Positions 812 to 41,191 of a stretch of 64,000 nt of DNA are shown piece by piece; the stretch's first letter is position 1, and each line of letters starts with the position of its first letter. Under the pieces are notes generated by a model. It was not told the origin of the DNA and searched no databases. It was given only the letters and a program-made list of their open reading frames with translations. The position numbers were made by a program, and so were the translations under genes. The stretch lies in sequence record MH791414.1, one strand, 5' to 3'.

Positions 812-904
812 GGTAGGTTGGCAGAGGTGGATTATTGCAACGGTCTTGAAAACCGTCGGCGGGAGAAATCTCGTCCGTGGGTTCGAATCCCACACCTACC
901 TCCA
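812..904 (+). tRNA. tRNA-Ser(TGA)
   Basis: Cloverleaf, anticodon arm ACGGT-CTTGAAA-ACCGT, long variable arm, GTTCGAATC, encoded CCA. Confidence 0.95.
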
Positions 905-908
905 AAAT

Positions 909-1001
909 GCGCGAGTGGCGAAGTTGGTTGAAACGCATCGGACTTAAAATCCGATACTGCATAATGGCACACCGTGGGTTCGATTCCCACCTCGCGTACC
1001 A
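909..1001 (+). tRNA. tRNA-Leu(TAA)
   Basis: Anticodon arm TCGGA-CTTAAAA-TCCGA, long variable arm, CCA end. Confidence 0.95.
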
Positions 1002-1010
1002 TAATTAAAT

Positions 1011-1110
1011 GGTTCTGCCCTTACTAATTTAGAGCGAGATAAGCCCTCGCAGATGGTGATGGTAATCCGCAAGAAGACCATAAACAAAGGCTAATTGGTG
1101 AGAACCACCA
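1011..1110 (+). ncRNA. 100-nt small RNA with tRNA-like acceptor stem and ACCA end
   Basis: GGTTCT/AGAACC terminal stem then ACCA; long inner stem; GCGAG/CTCGC hairpin. Confidence 0.6.
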
Positions 1111-1161
1111 ATGGGGATCGCGACAGAATCATTTAATTATGGATTATTTTGGAATTTTATT

Positions 1162-1503
1162 ATGAATAAATTACAACGGGAAACTTATCAAAAAGACGTT
1201 TCTTTTCTTGTAAGGAAAGGTTTGACAATTCAACAAGCTTCTCTTGTTGTAAAACAAACAAAGCCTGAATATGATATGCAAGAAAATATCTATCGATATT
1301 TTAACAAAGACAACAAGGAAACTTATGTGATCCAACGTTTGGGTAAATGTTGTGGTCCATGGCTGAGTGTAAGTTGTCGAAAACTCAACAAAAAAGGTTT
1401 TATTAAGTTTGATTTTTCTGATATAATCTATGTTGAGTATATGGGTATGAAAGTCGAGGCTCATAGAGTCATTTTTGGGAATGTACCAAATGTTATCGTT
1501 TAA
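1162..1503 (+). CDS. hypothetical protein
   Basis: Track ORF 1111..1503; ATG at 1162 preferred because 1111 abuts the small RNA. Confidence 0.65.
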   Translation: MNKLQRETYQKDVSFLVRKGLTIQQASLVVKQTKPEYDMQENIYRYFNKDNKETYVIQRLGKCCGPWLSVSCRKLNKKGFIKFDFSDIIYVEYMGMKVEAHRVIFGNVPNVIV

Positions 1504-1654
1504 AGAATATATTTCTTTGGAAGAAAAAATTGAACATAGAAATGGAAAATGGTATGTTATGGATTCTACTGGTTCTAAGGAATTGGGTGAACATGACTCC
1601 AAAGAAAAAGCCGTTGCTCAACTTCAAGCCATAGAAATAAACAAACATAAATAA
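1490..1654 (+). CDS. 54-aa protein with capsid-targeting-like leader (MLSFKEYISLEE), putative internal head protein
   Basis: Translated by hand: MLSFKEYISLEEKIEHRNGKWYVMDSTGSKELGEHDSKEKAVAQLQAIEINKHK; below the track length cutoff. Confidence 0.65.
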   Translation: MLSFKEYISLEEKIEHRNGKWYVMDSTGSKELGEHDSKEKAVAQLQAIEINKHK

Positions 1655-1662
1655 TTCACTCC

Positions 1663-1670
1663 CCTAAATA
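1663..1670 (+). promoter_or_regulatory. late promoter CCTAAATA
   Basis: Intergenic, upstream of tRNA-Asn. Confidence 0.7.
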
Positions 1671-1707
1671 TTTGTGTTACAATAGAAAATATAAAATCTT
1701 CTTTGGC

Positions 1708-1784
1708 GGTTCGTTAGCTCAGTTGGTTAGAGCGCCCGCCTGTTAAGTGGAAGGTCGTGGGTTCAAGTCCCACACGAACCGCCA
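1708..1784 (+). tRNA. tRNA-Asn(GTT)
   Basis: GGTTCGT/ACGAACC acceptor, loop CTGTTAA, GCCA end. Confidence 0.93.
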
Positions 1785-1798
1785 AAGAGGATTTTAAT

Positions 1799-1939
1799 CG
1801 CTTGTTGAACGTGGGAAAATAGCAAAATCAGGGAAAGTTGTGCACGACGGAACCTTAAAGTAGCTTTCTAAGTACCTGTTGTCTGGCAGTTCACACATAC
1901 GTATATTTGTGATGGGTTCGAGACCCTAACAAGCGTCCT
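1799..1939 (+). ncRNA. about 140-nt tRNA-like RNA (T4 rnaC/species-1-like candidate)
   Basis: CGCTTGTT/AACAAGCG terminal stem, T-arm GGGTTCGAGACCC, inner helix GGAAAGTTG/TAGCTTTCT. Confidence 0.6.
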
Positions 1940-1945
1940 AATTCT

Positions 1946-2026
1946 GGAGACTTTGGTGTATGGCGCACGGTACGTTATAAACCAGCGTACAAGAAACTCC
2001 CGTTCGAATCGGTAGGGTCTCCCCTA
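1946..2026 (+). pseudogene. degenerate tRNA or tRNA mimic, anticodon undefined
   Basis: GGAGACT/GGTCTCC acceptor and GTTCGAATC T-loop, but 11-nt anticodon loop, mismatched T-stem and CCT end. Confidence 0.55.
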
Positions 2027-2047
2027 AATTCTTATAATTTAAAAGAG

Positions 2048-2374
2048 GTTGTCTATGTCGTCGCTAAACGCAAGCCGCTTGGGCGGAAAGGAAAAAATTC
2101 GGTTTATGTAAGTGGATACACCACTGATAATAAACCAGTAGTTTGTAACGTATTTTATCAATCCGAAACAAACGGAATACCGCTTGATATTCTCATCGAG
2201 ACTCTGTATAATTCGGGATATGTCATTGATTGGATTACATTCATAAATGATGCTTTAAATGTTAAGTGGAAGAAAGAAACTATATTCAAGAAGATAAAAT
2301 ACGCTTTTGACGATATAGATATCGAAAACAAAGAAAATACTCTAGATAAAATATCTACCTATCTAGACCTATGA
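2048..2374 (+). CDS. small protein with AlaRS-like ETNGIPLD motif; no in-frame ATG
   Basis: Open frame VVYVVAKRKPLGRKGKNSVYVSGYTTDNKPVVCNVFYQSETNGIPLDILIETL...; the SD-linked ATG at 2055 is out of frame. Confidence 0.55.
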   Translation, partial: VVYVVAKRKPLGRKGKNSVYVSGYTTDNKPVVCNVFYQSETNGIPLDILIETLYNSGYVIDWITFINDALNVKWKKETIFKKIKYAFDDIDIENKENTLDKISTYLDL

Positions 2375-2386
2375 GTTGTCATAGGT

Positions 2387-2459
2387 GTGACCATAGTAGT
2401 AATCGATAGCTATCCGGATTGTGACTCCGGGGGTACGGGTTTGAGTCCCGTTGGTCACC
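2387..2459 (+). tRNA. tRNA-His(GTG), CCA not encoded
   Basis: CCGGA-TTGTGAC-TCCGG anticodon arm, C73 discriminator, followed by CCT. Confidence 0.85.
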
Positions 2460-2481
2460 CCTATGACAATTTAAAACAATT

Positions 2482-2567
2482 GGGTGTGTAACCGGTAATT
2501 GGTAGCCGCACGGTCTGTAAAACCGTTCCCTCTGGGACTGATGGTTCGAGTCCATCCACACCCACCA
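2482..2567 (+). tRNA. tRNA-Tyr(GTA)
   Basis: ACGGT-CTGTAAA-ACCGT, variable arm, ACCA. Confidence 0.95.
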
Positions 2568-2568
2568 C

Positions 2569-2644
2569 GCTGAATTAGCTCATCTGGTAGAGCGACGGTC
2601 TTGTAATCCGTAGGTGGTCCGTTCGAGTCGGACATTCAGCACCA
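2569..2644 (+). tRNA. tRNA-Thr(TGT)
   Basis: GCTGAAT/ATTCAGC acceptor, loop CTTGTAA, ACCA. Confidence 0.92.
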
Positions 2645-2650
2645 ATTTCC

Positions 2651-2727
2651 GGTCCCTTAGCTCAGTTGGTTAGAGCAACCGACTCATAATCGGTGGGTCG
2701 CTGGTTCGAGTCCAGCAGGGATCACCA
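2651..2727 (+). tRNA. tRNA-Ile2/Met(CAT)
   Basis: Loop CTCATAA; body resembles enterobacterial lysidine tRNA-Ile2 as recalled. Confidence 0.9.
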
Positions 2728-2748
2728 GATTTAAAAGGAAAATAATTT

Positions 2749-2988
2749 GTGAAAATGGAATATGTCGGTGATAATAGATTGAAATCGTTTCACGTAAATT
2801 CACCGGATGAATTATTCTCATATAAGCATATTGGATTTTCGAAATGGGATCTTGAAATATTATCATCTAAGATATCAAAAATAGATGTGGTTTATTGGTC
2901 TGATACCCCACCTTGGATAAAAGAAGATAAAATATCTTGGAGTATTGACAAAGATCGTCTGGTTGATTACATTAATAAGCTGTTATGA
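2749..2988 (+). CDS. hypothetical protein within tRNA cluster
   Basis: 79-aa ORF with AAGGA SD. Confidence 0.65.
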   Translation: MKMEYVGDNRLKSFHVNSPDELFSYKHIGFSKWDLEILSSKISKIDVVYWSDTPPWIKEDKISWSIDKDRLVDYINKLL

Positions 2989-3080
2989 GTCCCACAGCTT
3001 TCAAAATTATCAAATGGGATGTTGATGCGCGTATGTAGCCGGGTTATAATGACCAAGATTCATGAAGGGTAAAAGACTAC

Positions 3081-3088
3081 CCTAAATA
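3081..3088 (+). promoter_or_regulatory. late promoter CCTAAATA
   Basis: Immediately upstream of initiator tRNA. Confidence 0.7.
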
Positions 3089-3092
3089 TCTG

Positions 3093-3166
3093 TGCGGGGT
3101 CGAGAAGTGGTGTCTCATGGGACTCATTATCCCACTACGCAGGTTCGAATCCTGCCTCCGCTTCCA
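3093..3166 (+). tRNA. tRNA-fMet(CAT)
   Basis: 1:72 mismatch and three G:C pairs in anticodon stem (TGGGA/TCCCA), which are initiator identity elements. Confidence 0.88.
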
Positions 3167-3170
3167 AATT

Positions 3171-3242
3171 CGGTGTGTAACTCAGTCGGTTAGAGGACGG
3201 GCAACTTGCCCGTTGGTCGCGGGTTCGAGTCCCGTCACACCA
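3171..3242 (+). pseudogene. tRNA mimic with collapsed anticodon loop
   Basis: Normal D- and T-arms; anticodon arm ACGGGC-AACTT-GCCCGT (6 bp stem, 5-nt loop, no U33). Confidence 0.6.
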
Positions 3243-3268
3243 AATAGTTTTATTATGAGGTTTTTATT

Positions 3269-3463
3269 ATGTCTTCAATTAAAAATATAGTTGAAAACTG
3301 GACTGTTGGTGAAGGGATCATTCATTGGAAGAATAAAACTTCTAGTTTAGTGGTTTTTGGATTTGCTCCAAACGGAGAACCTGCCTTTAAGTTCAAAGGA
3401 AAAGAAAGATTGACATCAATACGTCAGGTAGAAAAATCTATTTTATCTGCAAAATTGATTTAA
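3269..3463 (+). CDS. hypothetical protein
   Basis: 64-aa ORF, GAGG SD. Confidence 0.65.
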   Translation: MSSIKNIVENWTVGEGIIHWKNKTSSLVVFGFAPNGEPAFKFKGKERLTSIRQVEKSILSAKLI

Positions 3464-3469
3464 TAAAAT

Positions 3470-3545
3470 GCGTCGTTAGTTCAGTTGGTAGAACACCGGA
3501 CTTTTAATCCGGGGGTCACTGGTTCGAGCCCAGTACGGCGTACCA
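3470..3545 (+). tRNA. tRNA-Lys(TTT)
   Basis: CCGGA-CTTTTAA-TCCGG, ACCA. Confidence 0.95.
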
Positions 3546-3551
3546 AATTTC

Positions 3552-3628
3552 GGGGGATTAGCTCAGTTGGAATGAGCGACTGGTTTGCAACCAGTAGGTC
3601 ATCGGTTCGAGCCCGATATCCTCCACCA
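3552..3628 (+). tRNA. tRNA-Ala(TGC)
   Basis: ACTGG-TTTGCAA-CCAGT; G3:U70 identity pair. Confidence 0.95.
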
Positions 3629-3639
3629 AATAATTTCAA

Positions 3640-3714
3640 GCCTGTATGGTGTTAATGGTAACATGTCGTCCTTCCAAGTCGAAGTTCCGGGTTCGAGTCC
3701 CGATTCAGGCTCCA
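3640..3714 (+). tRNA. tRNA-Gly(TCC)
   Basis: Loop CTTCCAA, U73 discriminator, CCA. Confidence 0.9.
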
Positions 3715-3828
3715 AAAGAAATAAGGCATAGGGCTCTAGATTCCTAGTCAGTTTCTCACCCCTAGTTGCTGCATATACCCCGACTTTTCCGTGACTGGTG
3801 TAAAAAGGTTTGGGTAAACGTATTAAAT

Positions 3829-3907
3829 CCGCGTGTAGGCTAGTCAGGTCGAGGTCGTCTGGTTTGGGACCAGAAAGTCGGGTGTTCGAATCACCCCACG
3901 CGGACCA
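3829..3907 (+). tRNA. tRNA-Pro(TGG)
   Basis: TCTGG-TTTGGGA-CCAGA, ACCA. Confidence 0.93.
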
Positions 3908-4558
3908 AATTCTATAGAGTGAGTAACCGGTTGCAAACGGACTCATAAAGTCGTCAAACCTTAGTACCCTCTCCCGAAAATATCGGTGATGCGACTAAAA
4001 TGAAGGCGCAAATTGAGAATTTATTTTCACAAAGCTATTGCTTCTGGATTTAAATTCTCAGATACTCTTAATTTGAGCGGGTTACTGGTCATCCCCTCGT
4101 AAAACAATATCAAAATCTTAGTGGTTCGGTCGCGACATATGAACCAAGAGTATCTGAGAATTTAAGTTTAAAAGAACTTCCTTCGGGAATGGGGTACATA
4201 GACGGGGCGCACCCCATTGTACCGACGCTTTAAGTAGCCCGTGCGAGAGACTAAAAAGCTGACCCTACCCTCTCCCAGTAATGGTGATGGAGCTTCCTTT
4301 CCTGTAATAAGGTTCCAGTCCGTGACGGGTAAAAGGTTACATAAGGAGAATTGCTTGTGAATGACCACTGATTCAAGCCAACACATAAGCGCGTCTATCA
4401 TGACGATAAATAGGCTTAGATTCCCGTAAGGGCCTAAGCGTAAAAGTAACGAGCAAGACCGTCTTACAGGCGTAGCCCATTGGGGTGATGATGTTTGTAT
4501 GTTTGGGCTCGGGTAGCCAATGCTATTAAGTCTGGTGATGGTGCGACCAGATCTTTTC
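3908..4558 (+). ncRNA. candidate large structured ncRNA (about 650 nt, ROOL/GOLLD-like class)
   Basis: No sense ORF; perfect 20-bp helix, UUCG and GNRA tetraloop hairpins, many further stems; between tRNA-Pro and tRNA-Trp. Confidence 0.7.
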
Positions 4559-4559
4559 T

Positions 4560-4634
4560 AGGGTGTTAGTATAGCGGTATTATGCCGGATTCCAAATCCG
4601 TGCGACTGGGGTTCGAATCCTCAACACCCTGCCA
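4560..4634 (+). tRNA. tRNA-Trp(CCA)
   Basis: AGGGTGT/ACACCCT acceptor, loop TTCCAAA, GCCA. Confidence 0.92.
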
Positions 4635-4657
4635 AATTTTAATGAGATGATTATATT

Positions 4658-4876
4658 ATGAAAATTGTTCGTAAGAATGGTGATGAAATTATTTTTCATA
4701 CACAGGTTAGTAAATTCTATGGCGTTATTAAAGAAGGTGTTCTTTATGTTGGTACATCTCCGACAACTAAACCATCTGTAGAAAGTTCTGTGTTTATTAT
4801 AAATATGGATGATGTAGCTTATTTCCATGAAAGAAATGAAAACCAATTTGATTACTATTTCGCCCCTAATAAGTAA
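4658..4876 (+). CDS. hypothetical protein
   Basis: 72-aa ORF between tRNAs. Confidence 0.65.
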   Translation: MKIVRKNGDEIIFHTQVSKFYGVIKEGVLYVGTSPTTKPSVESSVFIINMDDVAYFHERNENQFDYYFAPNK

Positions 4877-4934
4877 TTTTGGATGATCTTGTTACTTTGT
4901 ACAAAGAAGCGTAAGTAACGGAAAAACCGTCTTA

Positions 4935-5010
4935 GGTGGATTAGCTCAGTAGGTAGAGCAAACGACCGATAATCGTTTGGTCGCTGGTTCAAGTCCAGCA
5001 TTCACCACCA
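4935..5010 (+). tRNA. tRNA-Ile(GAT)
   Basis: AACGA-CCGATAA-TCGTT (C at position 33), ACCA. Confidence 0.88.
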
Positions 5011-5016
5011 AATTCA

Positions 5017-5104
5017 GGAGAAGTGGATGAGCGGTTTAAATCGCTCCCCTGCTAAGGGAGTAAACCGAAAGGTTTCGAGAGTTCGAATCTCTCTTTCTCC
5101 GCCA
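5017..5104 (+). tRNA. tRNA-Ser(GCT)
   Basis: CTCCC-CTGCTAA-GGGAG, long variable arm, GCCA. Confidence 0.95.
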
Positions 5105-5110
5105 AATATA

Positions 5111-5187
5111 GAGGATGTAGTAGAGTTGGTTAATATTCCAGCCTGTCACGTTGGAGATCGCGGGTTCGAGCCCCGTCATCCTCGCCA
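5111..5187 (+). tRNA. tRNA-Asp(GTC)
   Basis: CCAGC-CTGTCAC-GTTGG, GCCA. Confidence 0.95.
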
Positions 5188-15862: not shown

Positions 15863-18800
15863 ATGGCAGATCTTAAGAGTTCATCCACGGCTGGGGGTGG
15901 GTTAGTCTGGACACAGACCAATTTACCATTTTCCCCACAGGATATTAAGCTGTTTTATGATGGTAAAGAAATTATAGATAATACAAACAACCAAACAATT
16001 GGTGGTAATAAAAACTTCACTGGTACTTTGACTTATAAAACACCGTCTTCGTCTAATGAAGTTGCAATAAAAAGTTATGTGGACGGCTTGAATAGTACAT
16101 CTGTTAAATCCGTCAATGGTACTCTACCAATAGTTGTTACTACTGGGGTTAACCCGACTGTATCTATTAATAACGCGACTCAAAGCGCCCATGGTGCTAT
16201 GAGCAAAGAAGACAAGGTTAAACTAGACGGTCTTCCTGTACGTGCGGTAAACCGCGACGGCGATACAATGACTGGTAACCTAGGGTTGGTAAATTTAACT
16301 GCTACTGGGATGGTTACTGCTACCACTGGGTTAATTAATGCTGACGCAGATTATGGTCAAAGAATGGTCCTTTCTGGTTCGACTGGCTATTTCCAATCTG
16401 GTAAAAAAGACCGTAATCTTGATGACCAAAGAATGATGTTTTCTGGATATCTTGGGGTTCCTCTGAGTTATTCCGCAACAATGATGAAGGATGGCGTTAA
16501 CCCTATCGTTCGTTGGGGGTCTGCGAGTTATGATATTCTTCACCGTGGTAACCTACCTTCGGCAGAAGATATCAAAGCAATGGCAGTATATGACCGTCCA
16601 ACCGGTGATGATTGTAACAACGCAACGATGCCGGGTAACTATGGTATCTTTGCGAACACAGCAAATACACCTTTTGGAAGTGGTCCTAGTGGTTCTACCC
16701 TTCTTGTAACTAAATGGGGTAATGGCGCTAACGCACAAATTTTCTTCTCGTATACATCCGACCGGGTTTTCATTCGTCGTCAATATATCGGTGTTTGGCA
16801 GGCATGGACAGAAGTTTATACCTCTGCAAACAAACAACCTGTTGGTGGTATGGGTCTTGGTGTTGGTGACAGTCCAAACGCAATTACTGTAACCGGTGGG
16901 GTCCGAGACTTCAACCTAGTTAAGACAACTGGTGTGTTTACCGTAGATGGTAACTGGTCAAACGGTGTTGATAATTCACCTACTGCATCTTCACATACTG
17001 GTATGGTTGAAGTAAAACAACGTGCATTTGATAATATGACTATTCAGACATTCTATTATCACATCAATGTTGCAGATACAACAACTCAACGTGCATATAC
17101 TCGGATTTGGCAGAATGCATCTACCGGTTGGAGTGCGTGGATTCCTACTGGTGTTTGGGAACAAGTAAACACCTATAGAACTGGTATTCTGAGACACAAC
17201 AACGCGACTAACGACGATTCAGTTTATCCTTATGTATCTTATACTAAGGAAAAGTATCGTGATGGTGTTGCTGCTGGTATTGGATATGTTATTGGAGAAA
17301 TAGGTTTTCGGGCTGGTTCAGCTAATAGATACGACCCACACTCTGGGGATCAATTGGCTAGAATCTTAGGTCAAGCGTATAACACAACAACAACCGGTCA
17401 ATATGAAGGTGGACTATTCCTCGCATCCAGATATAGAAACACAGATGGGACAGTTGGTGACACTAGTACATTCTTATTAAGTCGTTCTGTTGGTGCGGAA
17501 CTGACTCATGCAGGAAAGAAAGTTCAAATTAATACTGGGGTTGTTAGTGCAGAGAAATATATCTCAAATTCTTCTGGGTATGCTTTGCAATATGCAAACA
17601 ACTCACAACAAGGGATCTATTTCGATAACAGAACTATTATTGGTGGTTCGTCGGTTGGGACTGACGGTGTTATTATTCGTCCAAATGGTTCGGGAACAAT
17701 TACCGGGGAAACCGTATTTAATGCGAACGGTACTATTTCCAATAACCAAGCTCCGACTTTAGCAATGCACTTAACCAATAAGGCATATGTTGATAGCGTT
17801 GCTCTTGGTGGATTTAGTTCTATTATCGGATTGAAAGATGCAGATAACCTAAATGATATAAAGACTGCTGGGATTTATAGCCAAACCGCAAACGTAAAAG
17901 CGTTAACTAGCTTGAACTATCCAGTACAAAAAGCTGGTAACTTAATCGTTACTACTTCCGCTGGGGTAATTCAAAAATATTGGGTATATAACTCGTCTGA
18001 GGTTTGGTCTCGCGCTCAATATTCGACCGGTGATTGGAAACCGTGGTATAGGGATTATAACGAAGAGTTTAAACCTACTTCTGCTGATGTTGGGGCTTTG
18101 TCTTTAACTGGTGGAACTGTTACCGGTGATGTTAGATTTAATTCTGGTAACACAACTAGACTATCTCTTGGTGGTGGATCTGATTATTACGTAGAACGTT
18201 CGCCATCTGGTTTAACATTAGCTTCTGGTACTATTAATCCGAAGGTTAGAGTTGATAACACTGATTATGATATCTATCATGTTGGGAATAAACCATCACT
18301 AACTGAATTGGGTTTGCAATATACCATACCTAGTGCGGGTGGTACTCCAATTTATGTTAGATTGGCTACTGTCGGTAGCACTGATTCAAGTATATCATTC
18401 TCGATTTACGGATTGGGTGACTTTGGTCAGGCGAAACGCGCAACTTATGATGTTAACGTTTCAACCAGATCCGACGGTATAATAGTTGCGGTGAACTCTC
18501 TTGATGTCGATGCACTTTATAACCAAAAACCGAAATTCTATTACAGGAAAGTAGGATCCCTGTTTGAAGTGTGGCTTAAAACACCTAACTATAACGCCAC
18601 ATCTACATTAACTAGATTAGATGGAAGTAGTAATAATATCAAGGTTGACTCGGTTACACAAACAGAACCGACTGGTCTTACAGAAGTAACTATAAACCAG
18701 ATATACACCACTCGGTTTGCTCCAACTGCGAATGCTGTAGGTGCTCTACCGATTACAGGTGGTACTGTTACTGGTCAACTGGGATTAAGTGCAACTTATA

Positions 18801-20464
18801 ACGGATCAAGTGTAAATGCGCAAATCGCTCATATAGGTTCTGATGCAAGTCAATCCCTGTTTATTCGAAACATGCGTGAACACAATACAGCTACATGGAT
18901 TTGGGAAAAAGTATATAGCGGTAGCTTATACTACTCAACCGGGATCAACGGTGGTGGTCAAGCCAAAATAAGAATGAACGTGACTGGATCTGGTGATATT
19001 TATCTAGGAAATGCAGATAAACGTGTCTACCACGAAGGTTATGAGACTACTCCCGCAAAAATTGGTGCTTACACCAAAGCCGAAACCGATAGTCTTCTGG
19101 GTTCCGCAGGTAGAAAAACGGTAGAAGTTAGTAAACCTTCTGGAATCACAGCGAACCATTATGTTCCAGTAGTCTTGACTAGCTTGAAAAACCGTGAACA
19201 TGTTTATATCAATACTCGTTCCTCGGGTGGAACTGACCCAATGAACAACTGTTCATTTAATGGTATAGTTCGTTCTGGGGGGTGGGGTGATGGTGGTAGT
19301 TATGTAACCGGTCAATTCACCATTTTTCATACTAGTGAACGGGCTCTACACTCAGTGTATGGCGGTACAGAAGGTGATGGATTTGTTGCGTTCTATGTAC
19401 ACGAAAAAGCATTCCCAATAACAGTTATTGTTGATGGTGATGTCGGCGTGGCAACTGCTGCATCTGTGTCGGCGGGGACTTCAATTTTCACAGCATCTGC
19501 CGACCCAGCAACTGGTAATACTAAAGCCACAATGCTTGCACAATGGGCGGACGGTGGTGGATTCTACCAAGGTTCTTCACGAACCCCATCATTTCAAACT
19601 ATGAACACCGAATTGGACAAGAAATTGGACAAGACTGGTGGAACCGTAACTGGAAATCTTTCTGTTAATACACAATTGACAGTAGGTAATAGCGTTATTT
19701 GTGGTGGTGTGACATCTGATAGTTGGTTGCGAACAAATGGCGACAATGGTTGGTACAGTGAAAAATGGGGTGGTGGAATTCATATGTCGGATGCTCAATG
19801 GATCCGGACATATGGAGGCAAGAAACTTCACGTTGCTAACCCAGATGGAAACGCAATCAATACAGATGGTGGCATTAACGCTGCTAAGGGTTTGACTCTT
19901 GGTGGTGGTGCTGTAGTTGGTGGCAGTATAAACGTCACAGGGGGTTATATGTCACTGACAAGCTCCAATAACACCCTATTGGAATTCCATACACCGGGTG
20001 TATCCGCAGCGATGATTTATAAAGGACCAGAGGGTAACCTTCGGTTTGTCACGTCAAACGGTTCTGGTGGTGAAACCTTATTGCGAATGCAAATTGACAC
20101 AGGCGGAAACGTCGTTACTTCCGGTTCTATAAATAGTAGTGGTTACTTGCTCGAAGCCGGTCAACGTGTTTACTCTCCAAATAACCAAGTCCCAGACGGC
20201 GTTATTATGCGAGCAGTTACAAACGCTGGCGGAAATATGGCAGTCGGGTCATATGCCATGATCACGGTTAAAGCCAACCTTGGTCCACTGGGTCCGGGTA
20301 CTGTCTTACAAGGGACACAGATCCAATTTTCTAACGCAGAAGGTACTAACTTTGTTGCTTGTAACTATGGACAGTGGAGATTGATGGGGGTGTCAAGAGC
20401 ACAATCACAAAACTCTGATGGTTGGGGTTCTTGGAACGTCACACTTGCACAACGCATTACTTAA
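15863..20464 (+). CDS. 36: long tail fibre distal subunit, gp36-like N-terminus fused to gp37-like shaft and tip
   Basis: MADLKSSSTAGGGLVW resembles T4 gp36 start; repeated xGGTVTG motifs and three knob-like modules. Confidence 0.85.
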   Translation: MADLKSSSTAGGGLVWTQTNLPFSPQDIKLFYDGKEIIDNTNNQTIGGNKNFTGTLTYKTPSSSNEVAIKSYVDGLNSTSVKSVNGTLPIVVTTGVNPTVSINNATQSAHGAMSKEDKVKLDGLPVRAVNRDGDTMTGNLGLVNLTATGMVTATTGLINADADYGQRMVLSGSTGYFQSGKKDRNLDDQRMMFSGYLGVPLSYSATMMKDGVNPIVRWGSASYDILHRGNLPSAEDIKAMAVYDRPTGDDCNNATMPGNYGIFANTANTPFGSGPSGSTLLVTKWGNGANAQIFFSYTSDRVFIRRQYIGVWQAWTEVYTSANKQPVGGMGLGVGDSPNAITVTGGVRDFNLVKTTGVFTVDGNWSNGVDNSPTASSHTGMVEVKQRAFDNMTIQTFYYHINVADTTTQRAYTRIWQNASTGWSAWIPTGVWEQVNTYRTGILRHNNATNDDSVYPYVSYTKEKYRDGVAAGIGYVIGEIGFRAGSANRYDPHSGDQLARILGQAYNTTTTGQYEGGLFLASRYRNTDGTVGDTSTFLLSRSVGAELTHAGKKVQINTGVVSAEKYISNSSGYALQYANNSQQGIYFDNRTIIGGSSVGTDGVIIRPNGSGTITGETVFNANGTISNNQAPTLAMHLTNKAYVDSVALGGFSSIIGLKDADNLNDIKTAGIYSQTANVKALTSLNYPVQKAGNLIVTTSAGVIQKYWVYNSSEVWSRAQYSTGDWKPWYRDYNEEFKPTSADVGALSLTGGTVTGDVRFNSGNTTRLSLGGGSDYYVERSPSGLTLASGTINPKVRVDNTDYDIYHVGNKPSLTELGLQYTIPSAGGTPIYVRLATVGSTDSSISFSIYGLGDFGQAKRATYDVNVSTRSDGIIVAVNSLDVDALYNQKPKFYYRKVGSLFEVWLKTPNYNATSTLTRLDGSSNNIKVDSVTQTEPTGLTEVTINQIYTTRFAPTANAVGALPITGGTVTGQLGLSATYNGSSVNAQIAHIGSDASQSLFIRNMREHNTATWIWEKVYSGSLYYSTGINGGGQAKIRMNVTGSGDIYLGNADKRVYHEGYETTPAKIGAYTKAETDSLLGSAGRKTVEVSKPSGITANHYVPVVLTSLKNREHVYINTRSSGGTDPMNNCSFNGIVRSGGWGDGGSYVTGQFTIFHTSERALHSVYGGTEGDGFVAFYVHEKAFPITVIVDGDVGVATAASVSAGTSIFTASADPATGNTKATMLAQWADGGGFYQGSSRTPSFQTMNTELDKKLDKTGGTVTGNLSVNTQLTVGNSVICGGVTSDSWLRTNGDNGWYSEKWGGGIHMSDAQWIRTYGGKKLHVANPDGNAINTDGGINAAKGLTLGGGAVVGGSINVTGGYMSLTSSNNTLLEFHTPGVSAAMIYKGPEGNLRFVTSNGSGGETLLRMQIDTGGNVVTSGSINSSGYLLEAGQRVYSPNNQVPDGVIMRAVTNAGGNMAVGSYAMITVKANLGPLGPGTVLQGTQIQFSNAEGTNFVACNYGQWRLMGVSRAQSQNSDGWGSWNVTLAQRIT

Positions 20465-38950: not shown

Positions 38951-39235
38951 TTATTCCTTTACAATTTCAAGATCTTCTAGAACAATCTCGGTTTCAAACG
39001 GTAGATTACAGCCGATTGTGATGTAGTTTCCGAATGTACGCATAATGCTATGCATTTGGTCACGATATACCATACCATTTTCTCGGATGGATTCGACCCG
39101 TTTGATGAAGTATTCCCGATATTTGTCATTTGGGAACTGCTCATAAAATTCCATCCAGTTTTTCTCTAGGATTTCAAGACCAAAGTCGGTTAGGGTTACG
39201 GTTGCATAGCTATTGACGTTAAAAATCGCTTTCAT
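38951..39235 (-). CDS. hypothetical protein
   Basis: GAGGA SD. Confidence 0.7.
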   Translation of the reverse strand: MKAIFNVNSYATVTLTDFGLEILEKNWMEFYEQFPNDKYREYFIKRVESIRENGMVYRDQMHSIMRTFGNYITIGCNLPFETEIVLEDLEIVKE

Positions 39236-39716: not shown

Positions 39717-40175
39717 TTATTCTGAAATTTTGTATTTTAAACCAAAAACCACAACGTTAGGTAGAACATCAACGATAACATCGAATTTATCTATCGGTGT
39801 GTGGAATGTTGTTTCAATTGCTACTAGAGGAAGTAACCCACCACCAATATCAACTCCGTTGTAGTATCTTTTTCCATCGTTGTATATTGTACCTTTTTTA
39901 TATCCAGATGCAATACCAAACCGATATCCAATATCAAAATATTCCGATTCACAGAAGTTATCGGAATATGATATTTGAACTGATTTAGAATCGATAGAGT
40001 TTTTATCAACATAAATCACAGAAATATTGTCTACTTGGATACCAACCGATGGATGTATTTCATTTTGTCCAGAGTCCTTGTAATGTTTACTAACACCACC
40101 AAGGATAAGGTTTATTTCTTTAGCGTATACACCAAAAGACGATAAAGAAGCTAATAATAGAGCCATGGATTTCAT
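39717..40175 (-). CDS. PagP-like outer-membrane beta-barrel protein
   Basis: Signal peptide; SKH..NEIHPSVG, KNS, LLPLVAI, C-terminal strand VVFGLKYKI parallel PagP motifs. Confidence 0.65.
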   Translation of the reverse strand: MKSMALLLASLSSFGVYAKEINLILGGVSKHYKDSGQNEIHPSVGIQVDNISVIYVDKNSIDSKSVQISYSDNFCESEYFDIGYRFGIASGYKKGTIYNDGKRYYNGVDIGGGLLPLVAIETTFHTPIDKFDVIVDVLPNVVVFGLKYKISE

Positions 40176-40232
40176 GGTATTCTCCTTTTGTTTGTCTCCT
40201 AGAAGGATACCACAAATATAAAATACTGCAAA

Positions 40233-40499
40233 TTATTTTTGCTCTTTTTCTTTGAGTGGTGTACCAAAATCGAATTGCATTTCTTTTTCTTTTTTGGATT
40301 TATAACGAGCGTATGCCGGTTGAATAATAAGCAAACTTAAGATAGTAAAAATAAGGATCCATCCAAGCCAAGGCCAACTTAGAAGAGGATACCACCCTGT
40401 AATCGAGTTCAAAGCCCCAAAAATAAAAGCCAAGATCATATGATTGTATTTTACAATGAAATCCATAATTAAATTCTCACTATCAGTATTGAATAACAA
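40233..40499 (-). CDS. membrane protein
   Basis: Two hydrophobic segments. Confidence 0.6.
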   Translation of the reverse strand: MLFNTDSENLIMDFIVKYNHMILAFIFGALNSITGWYPLLSWPWLGWILIFTILSLLIIQPAYARYKSKKEKEMQFDFGTPLKEKEQK

Positions 40500-40692: not shown

Positions 40693-41162
40693 TAGAATTG
40701 ATTTCCTTCTGAGTCTACGCGAAGAGATTCGCTTTTACCATAAAAATTGTCACCAGATACAAACCCAGCAGAAACGACCACCACGTTTGAACGAACACCA
40801 ACACATTTAGCAATCCGACGGACAACCAACGGCATATCTGCATGTGTAAAATCTTTAGAGAATATTACAACCGTACCACATAGGAACTTAACAAACTTCA
40901 TCTCATTACGCGGACGGGTATCTACAAATTGAACATCAAAAATTTCTTCTGAACTTGGGCGGAACCAATTAAAATATTGGTCGTACAGTTTTACAACTCC
41001 GAGTGTGTTATGGACATCATCTTGTTGTTCTTCTGTCAAATCGTCAGGTGTGTTCAGTTCGATGTACAAATAACCCGGTGTACTATAGTCGTAACGGAAA
41101 TCTTCACGGTCAATCTTAAATTTCAGTTTCATATTGTTTTCCTCATGATTTATCTTGATCAT
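40692..41162 (-). CDS. hypothetical protein (C-terminal SAGF...GKSESL module)
   Basis: 156 aa. Confidence 0.65.
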   Translation of the reverse strand: MIKINHEENNMKLKFKIDREDFRYDYSTPGYLYIELNTPDDLTEEQQDDVHNTLGVVKLYDQYFNWFRPSSEEIFDVQFVDTRPRNEMKFVKFLCGTVVIFSKDFTHADMPLVVRRIAKCVGVRSNVVVVSAGFVSGDNFYGKSESLRVDSEGNQF

Positions 41163-41191
41163 ACAGTAGACACATCCCTATGTCTACAAGT

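Follow-up and report, generated by a model that had tools for sequence, protein, structure and literature searches.

The outer-membrane barrels of the OmpA type (the N-terminal barrel of OmpA, OmpX, Ail and Lom; Pfam OMP_b-brl) have eight strands and variable loops. OMPLA (PldA) and PagL are barrel enzymes with a Ser/His-based site at the outer-leaflet rim, and OMPLA has 12 strands. The lipid A palmitoyltransferase PagP (PF07017; structures 1THQ, 3GP6 and 1MM4), a chromosomal protein of Enterobacterales, consists of a signal peptide followed by an eight-stranded outer-membrane barrel, and an amphipathic alpha-helix at the N-terminus is characteristic of PagP and its homologues (PMC2887491). 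Its residues H33, D76 and S77 are important for function (PMC5740924). We analysed a stretch of 64,000 nucleotides from sequence record MH791414.1 (the window hereafter), which matches Aeromonas phage Aswh_1 at 100% identity and phage ZPAH1 at 97%. Aswh_1 is a lytic T4-like phage (Straboviridae, Ishigurovirus) whose host is A. salmonicida. One gene in the window, ASwh1_348, is labelled 'hypothetical protein' in MH791414.1 and likewise in the ZPAH1 record. Its product is very probably an outer-membrane barrel, and we consider it probable that this barrel is a true, remote homologue of PagP within the small-barrel superfamily, with PagP as its nearest known branch, mainly because of its predicted structure and the coincidence of the functional columns.

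ASwh1_348 is a real gene and not a chance open reading frame (ORF). A first-pass annotation, made from the sequence alone, had proposed a PagP-like barrel at 39717-40175 without giving the strand; the ORF is indeed there, on the minus strand, and encodes 152 residues. The ZPAH1 copy is 100% identical, and 44 phage records, from phages infecting Aeromonas, Vibrio and Stenotrophomonas, contain relatives by tblastn. The product also matches PHROG 3600, which is annotated as PagP, with an expectation value (E) of 1.4e-27 and 97.6 bits; its residues 2-150 align to positions 159-309 of a profile 315 positions long. All 459 nt are the same in Aswh_1 and ZPAH1, so a comparison of synonymous changes between them is uninformative.

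The idea of a phage PagP is not new as an annotation, since PHROG 3600 and RefSeq label relatives of the ASwh1_348 protein in this way. The RefSeq name is 'antimicrobial peptide resistance and lipid A acylation protein PagP', and the carriers of the RefSeq or PHROG label are Aeromonas phages 65, D3, D6, LAh_8 and AS-gz, Stenotrophomonas phage IME13 and Vibrio phages K566/K567. These proteins form one family with the ASwh1_348 protein, which has the same motifs and is 43-59% identical to the Aeromonas phage copies; the PagP name they bear is a transferred label. Phage 'PagP-like' genes have been mentioned at the annotation level (bioRxiv 10.64898/2026.09.21.753358; PMC10269572), and a 2026 preprint treats such genes as candidate virulence factors by name alone (bioRxiv 10.64898/2026.09.21.753358). 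Our literature search found no experimental study of phage PagP homologues. What is new here is that the family fails the PagP model, lacks the helix and has Asn fixed at the position of Asp76. The family also appears to be confined to phages, and yet PagP is its nearest fold in two independent models.

The ASwh1_348 protein starts with a signal peptide (M1-A18) of the standard Sec type, with K2, a hydrophobic core and V-Y-A ahead of the predicted cut; the first-pass annotation had also read a signal peptide with this ending. The signal peptide is found throughout our alignment of the phage family (A2). A lipobox-like motif occurs in only 1 of 51 relatives and the Aswh_1 protein has none, hence we rejected a lipoprotein reading. 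AlphaFold2 was run on an alignment of the 51 relatives, and strands were assigned by DSSP. The resulting model of the ASwh1_348 protein is a confident eight-stranded barrel, in agreement with the barrel proposed from the beta-strand pattern, with a mean predicted local distance difference test score (pLDDT) of 94.1 and a predicted template modelling score (pTM) of 0.81. The strands cover residues 21-31, 40-48, 51-56, 65-76, 80-89, 115-125, 131-137 and 141-149, and a helix at residues 2-11 precedes the barrel. The periplasmic turns are short, and the loops lie on the opposite side, including the 25-residue extracellular loop L3 (residues 90-114). The last strand contains F144 and Y148, and the C-terminus of the Aswh_1 protein is I-S-E; the C-terminal residue is F in 27 and L in 11 of the 51 relatives. 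AlphaFold2 predicts the same eight-stranded fold (pLDDT 86.8) for a distant relative from a T4-like metagenomic phage, P0055, which is 29% identical to the ASwh1_348 protein. Signal peptide and fold together would place the ASwh1_348 protein in the outer membrane of the host.

PagP is the best structural match of the phage barrel in the PDB. Using Foldseek, we found PagP 1THQ as the top match of the ASwh1_348 model (E 2.4e-4, template modelling (TM) scores 0.56/0.58), while the top two matches of the P0055 model are PagP 3GP6 (E 4.6e-6, TM 0.63/0.62) and 1THQ (E 6.1e-5), with TM 0.60-0.63 for the pair. Across the two models the barrels Ail, OmpA and OmpX have TM scores of 0.28-0.51, compared with 0.56-0.63 for PagP. 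PagL (2ERV) is absent from the 50 best matches of the ASwh1_348 model and ranks only 11 for P0055, with TM 0.39-0.41, and OMPLA is in neither of the two lists. We therefore rejected membership in the PagL or OMPLA families by fold search; neither is there a sequence match to them. The comparison with both PagP and PagL had been suggested by the first-pass annotation, and it came out for PagP in two independent models, with PagL poor or missing.

The phage protein also differs from PagP in several respects. The amphipathic helix of PagP is missing, since strand 1 begins at residue 21 of a mature protein whose first residue is K19, and the helix region of PagP stays unaligned in the global profile alignment with the phage family. 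In PagP this helix is dispensable for folding and activity and serves as a stability clamp (PMC2887491), so its absence from the phage protein concerns family membership and not mechanism. In addition, the phage protein has a shorter loop 1 than PagP, a shorter first periplasmic turn region and a longer loop 3.

The profile comparison aligns the phage family with the functional residues of PagP. We took E. coli K-12 pagP from NC_000913 (accession per PMC4404585) as the reference and built an alignment of 18 Enterobacterales sequences (A4). Hhalign between A2 and A4 gave a score of 32.6 with E 1e-4 and ~14% identity, the probability being 56% locally and 72% globally over 105-138 columns. This is far higher than the controls, in which reversed PagP scored 13.3, shuffled columns 12.9 +/- 2.9 and shuffled blocks 16.3 +/- 3.9 (n=60 for each kind of shuffle). 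In this alignment S29-K30-H31 of the phage protein pairs with T56-W57-H58 of the E. coli precursor (mature Thr31 to His33), N38-E39 with N72-E73 (mature Asn47-Glu48), and K58-N59-S60 with K100-D101-S102 (mature Lys75-Asp76-Ser77), and the C-terminal strands of the two families pair as well. The pairing of H31 with His33 recurs in the local, global and low-mact runs. The family has 13 columns with a conservation of >=80%, and each of them pairs with a PagP column that is itself conserved, at >=94% in 12 cases and at 67% in one. Eight of these 13 pairs are identical residues, and the pairs include H33, D76 (with Asn) and S77. The Gly104, Gly106 and Pro123 columns of PagP are also common to the phage family, as is Asn47-Glu48. 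The order of motifs that the first-pass annotation had matched to E. coli PagP was thus reproduced against the reference sequence. The catalytic His33 and Ser77 of PagP have their counterparts in H31 and S60, and Asp76 is replaced by N59.

The best-conserved residues of the family lie on the extracellular side of the barrel and the variable part is loop 3. Among the 51 sequences, G26 is conserved in 50, S29 in 49, H31 in 50, N38 in 48, E39 in 43, G45 in 47, N59 in 51, S60 in 49, G87 in 50, G91 in 49, Y92 in 50 and P116 in 47. Strand 1 ends with S29 and H31, strand 2 has N38 and E39 at its top, and loop 2 contains N59 and S60; this rim is assigned to the extracellular side because the N-terminus is taken to be periplasmic, as in all such barrels. 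These six polar residues would make a candidate active site.

Asn takes the place of Asp76 (position 59) in 51 of 51 relatives and Asp is never found there, so N59 is a fixed and selected trait of the family and not damage to the Aswh_1 copy. Recent decay of an enzyme was rejected on the same ground. OMPLA uses a Ser-His-Asn triad, with Asn as the third residue, so Asn59 would be compatible with catalysis. The first-pass annotation had noticed the Asp-to-Asn change and considered altered or lost activity. The change is real and the chemistry may be altered, whereas the fixation of Asn59 in the aligned sequences speaks against a loss of activity and in favour of a chemistry that is conserved and possibly different.

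The lumen of the phage barrel is predicted to follow the same pattern as that of PagP. Judged from strand parity, with PagP as the only barrel compared, the mean hydropathy of the lumen side in the family is +0.92 in the outer half and -1.91 in the periplasmic half, and the aligned lumen residues of PagP show the same split with +1.07 and -1.29, respectively. By this analysis the lumen side has apolar or small residues in the outer half, and polar and charged ones in the periplasmic half. An outer lumen of the former kind suggests an acyl-chain pocket, and the pattern is what one would expect if the protein were an enzyme accommodating an acyl chain inside its barrel.

Our analysis suggests, on balance, that ASwh1_348 encodes an exported PagP-derived acyl enzyme of the outer membrane, which would remodel the outer-leaflet lipids of the infected cell. 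Exported by the Sec pathway and cleaved behind A18, the protein would enter the outer membrane of the host and form a minimal eight-stranded barrel there, a distant phage-borne relative of PagP. The acyl chain of an outer-leaflet lipid would enter the lumen laterally, the His/Ser/Asn site would cleave the acyl ester, and the released chain would be handed to lipid A or to water. The outcome would be a remodelled outer leaflet of the infected cell. The phage could gain from an altered lipopolysaccharide (LPS) surface that limits superinfection and wasted adsorption on infected cells or debris; alternatively, the gain could be a tighter and sturdier outer membrane until lysis. Catalysis, substrate, timing and the benefit to the phage, including the superinfection effects, are all what we infer. 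We lean slightly towards the protein being enzymatically active, and we are doubtful that it specifically acylates lipid A.

The following observations weigh against the proposed PagP relationship and enzyme function. The Pfam PagP model does not match the ASwh1_348 protein at E up to 10, none of six phage relatives reaches it at E 10, and 3 of the 51 relatives touch it only weakly (best E 0.031). Searches of NCBIfam and of the PDB sequences with the protein and with the profiles A1 and A2 gave no useful match even at E 10, and BLASTP against E. coli PagP gave E 1.3. A single block shuffle attained an hhalign score of 31.9, close to the real one. The amphipathic helix and the catalytic Asp are missing, and the lumen comparison carries the limits given above. 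The similarity is also not exclusive to PagP as judged from sequence, since the OmpA barrel scores as well or better locally. On a single-sequence footing hhalign gives OmpA 35.7 over 51 columns and PagP 21.5 over 108, and hmmsearch with the family profile gives OmpA 8.8 bits and PagP -0.1 bits. In Foldseek, Ail (E 6.2e-4) and OmpA (E 1.2e-3) come close behind PagP by E-value for the ASwh1_348 model, and barrels of the OmpA/OmpX/Ail type range from 6e-4 to 1e-2 over the two models. Having no Pfam match, no helix and a replaced Asp76, ASwh1_348 does not qualify as a member of the PagP family. The 'PagP-like outer-membrane beta-barrel' of the first-pass annotation holds as to signal peptide, eight-stranded model, best PDB match and key columns, short of membership in the PagP family. 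A word-indexed protein search returned only the ASwh1_348 protein itself, and the search with profile A2 returned only 6 proteins, with no bridge to PagP. A PDB sequence match to a monobody (E 0.39) was discarded as noise.

The OmpA scores raise the alternative that the protein is a non-enzymatic barrel of the OmpA/OmpX/Ail/Lom type, by which the phage would add a structural or surface-masking component to the envelope of its host. It might then hinder the adsorption of other phages or bind LPS, and its likeness to PagP would come from shared small-barrel ancestry. Phage-encoded small barrels without known enzyme activity do exist, e.g. lambda Lom, which is a precedent for such a role. Weak matches to Pfam OMP_b-brl in 2 of the 51 relatives (none for the ASwh1_348 protein) and the small distance in Foldseek E-value between Ail or OmpA and PagP point in the same direction, as does the absence of the PagP catalytic Asp from every family member. 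However, the OmpA match is limited to strands 2-5 and leaves out the His column, and the TM scores favour PagP in two independent models, natural barrels other than PagP having 0.40-0.51. In non-enzymatic barrels (carriers or adhesins) the extracellular rim is the most variable part. In the phage family, by contrast, the near-invariant S29, H31, N38, E39, N59 and S60 all sit at this rim, with invariant polar residues on the loops, and the variability falls on loop L3. Small barrels of the OmpA type have polar lumens, whereas the outer lumen of the phage family is apolar by the parity analysis. We regard a non-enzymatic barrel as unlikely.

An alternative hypothesis within the enzymatic readings, to which we give a small chance, could be that the protein hydrolyses lipids in the outer membrane instead of transferring acyl chains, as a PagP-derived barrel with a Ser-His-Asn (or Glu) set like that of OMPLA or PagL. 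Its action would be to strip lipid A of acyl chains, or to cleave phospholipids that arrive in the outer leaflet, without transfer to lipid A. In OMPLA (His142, Ser144, Asn156) and PagL (His126, Ser128, Glu140) the His and Ser are two residues apart on one strand and the third residue is on the next strand. The layout of the phage barrel resembles this geometry, as S29 and H31 share one face of strand 1 at a distance of two residues and N38 and E39 lie atop the adjacent strand, although its order, Ser-x-His, is the reverse of that in OMPLA and PagL. Asn in place of the PagP Asp in all 51 members fits a hydrolase, and so does the in vitro hydrolysis of an ester substrate analogue by PagP itself (PMC2887491). 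The fold searches speak against it, with PagL a poor structural match and OMPLA not listed, and the Pfam models of PagL and OMPLA match neither the ASwh1_348 protein nor its relatives. Returning to the PagP-derived acyl enzyme, we consider by analogy with OMPLA that an active protein is plausible, possibly tilted towards hydrolysis.

The barrel family looks phage-restricted, and its distribution does not look like a recent capture from a host. We searched 1.84 billion cluster representatives with HMMER (E below 1e-3) and found only 59 matching clusters, so the family is small; 58 of them are genuine, and the remaining one, P0054 (792 residues), is a false positive of the TPR/NB-ARC kind. Predicted viral structures searched with Foldseek added further phages, of Salinibacter and Cellulophaga. 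Every genomic context that we opened looks like phage, its small ORFs being densely packed and accompanied by marker domains of the T4 type. Among 185,579 species-representative bacterial genomes, two pattern scans, sensitive to close relatives only, found no relative. E. coli PagP had no tblastn match in 50,697 phage records, which indicates that no phage among those records carries a canonical enterobacterial PagP. Our phage-restricted reading is based on the phage-only contexts, the lack of matches in the bacterial genomes scanned and the lack of close E. coli PagP relatives in phages. Thus the phage family is found in phages and PagP on chromosomes. In phage avDM6, where synteny with a neighbouring gene is kept, the barrel gene has 59% identity and its neighbours 37-55%, making the barrel gene at least as conserved as its neighbours in this sequence comparison. 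The copies in Aeromonas phages 65 and 25 cover just 72% and 53% of the query, respectively, and the phage 65 protein (P0061) is annotated as shorter, with 137 residues. These two copies may be truncated, in which case the gene would be dispensable in some lineages.

Early expression of the barrel gene is plausible for the family and tentative for Aswh_1. The first-pass annotation had placed an early-type promoter directly upstream of the gene, and this was not reproduced. Our promoter scan, with a threshold of 9 of 12 positions, reported no site directly upstream; the candidate there, at 40232-40204 just past the stop codon of the upstream ORF, falls under this threshold. The best nearby sigma-70-like site on the minus strand is at 41186-41158, ~1 kb upstream of the barrel gene with three small ORFs in between, and is a possible operon promoter by its consensus match. 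In Vibrio phage YC, a sigma-70-like -35/-10 pair that fits the consensus perfectly, with a spacing of 17 nt, lies upstream of the orthologue (L006:1340-1431). As consensus matches go, the promoter evidence in YC is better than that in the Aswh_1 window, and because of this textbook pair, early expression by the host polymerase is plausible for the family. We found no minus-strand site of the T4-type late-promoter octamer near the barrel gene, which we treat as a lead only. The features of the locus are collected in Table 1.

Table 1. Positions in the window of ASwh1_348, the parts of its product and the nearby expression signals.
Feature	Position	Strand	Basis
PagP-like barrel coding sequence, gene ASwh1_348	39717..40175	-	152 codons + stop, ATG start; ORF list, 100% DNA match
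Signal peptide, residues 1-18, ends V-Y-A	40122..40175	-	Read from sequence; predicted signal peptidase I cut after A18
Mature protein, residues 19-152, predicted eight-stranded beta-barrel	39720..40121	-	AlphaFold2 pLDDT 94.1, DSSP strands
Near-invariant polar rim residues S29, H31, N38, E39, N59, S60, candidate active site	39996..40091	-	Conservation, codons checked
Shine-Dalgarno sequence GGAG	40182..40185	-	6 nt upstream of ATG; sequence
Weak sigma-70-like promoter candidate, TTTGCA, 17 nt, TATCCT	40204..40232	-	8/12 positions, read from sequence
Sigma-70-like site, TAGACA, 17 nt, TATGAT	41158..41186	-	10/12, promoter scan, consensus match only

ASwh1_348 lies in a long series of small minus-strand ORFs without known function, as non-structural regions of T4-type phages usually do look. 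PHROG scans of the eight genes neighbouring ASwh1_348 found only families of unknown function. A defence-system component was considered for ASwh1_348 and rejected, there being no PADLOC match. The upstream neighbour (40233-40466, minus strand) encodes a very hydrophobic protein of 77 residues, of unknown function (phrog_25646), in which two membrane segments are likely; it has an identical counterpart in ZPAH1 and was not found beside the avDM6 orthologue of the barrel gene. A short inverted repeat with a 5-7 bp stem (40162-40178), flagged as terminator-like on both strands, lies across the ATG of the barrel gene; it may block access to this codon in the mRNA, or it may be due to chance. The barrel gene and both its direct neighbours have every base in common with ZPAH1, unlike the gene at 38951-39235 (minus strand), in which 43 of 285 nt (17 amino acids) differ in a sharply bounded mosaic patch. 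Elsewhere in the window ARAGORN finds a cluster of 18 tRNA genes on the plus strand (812-5187), including tRNA-Phe(AAA) at 1947-2024 and tRNA-Ser(ACT) at 3170-3244 with unusual anticodons. The longest ORF of the window by far (1533 residues; 15863-20464) is on the plus strand, opposite to the series of small ORFs.

The finding calls for some caution in annotation. The name 'PagP', with its implication of antimicrobial peptide resistance, is spreading through the phage records of RefSeq, although the family does not reach the Pfam model and one of the catalytic residues is missing from it.

Temperate phages alter O-antigen, and we know of no lytic phage shown to alter lipid A or the lipid composition of the outer leaflet. 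We speculate, tentatively, that the family may consist of phage-restricted minimal lipid enzymes with the PagP fold, a fixed His/Ser/Asn set and no helix, which would rewrite the outer leaflet via acylation, deacylation or consumption of phospholipids. If this is true, it would mean superinfection exclusion or envelope control at the level of lipids, which would be new for virulent phages, and its users would be lytic phages of Aeromonas, Vibrio and other Gram-negative hosts. For control of the outer leaflet, a conserved barrel seen only in phage contexts and bearing an enzyme-like rim would be a compact candidate, and it may affect phage adsorption, outer-membrane permeability and the sensitivity to cationic peptides in the fish pathogens that are targeted by phage therapy.

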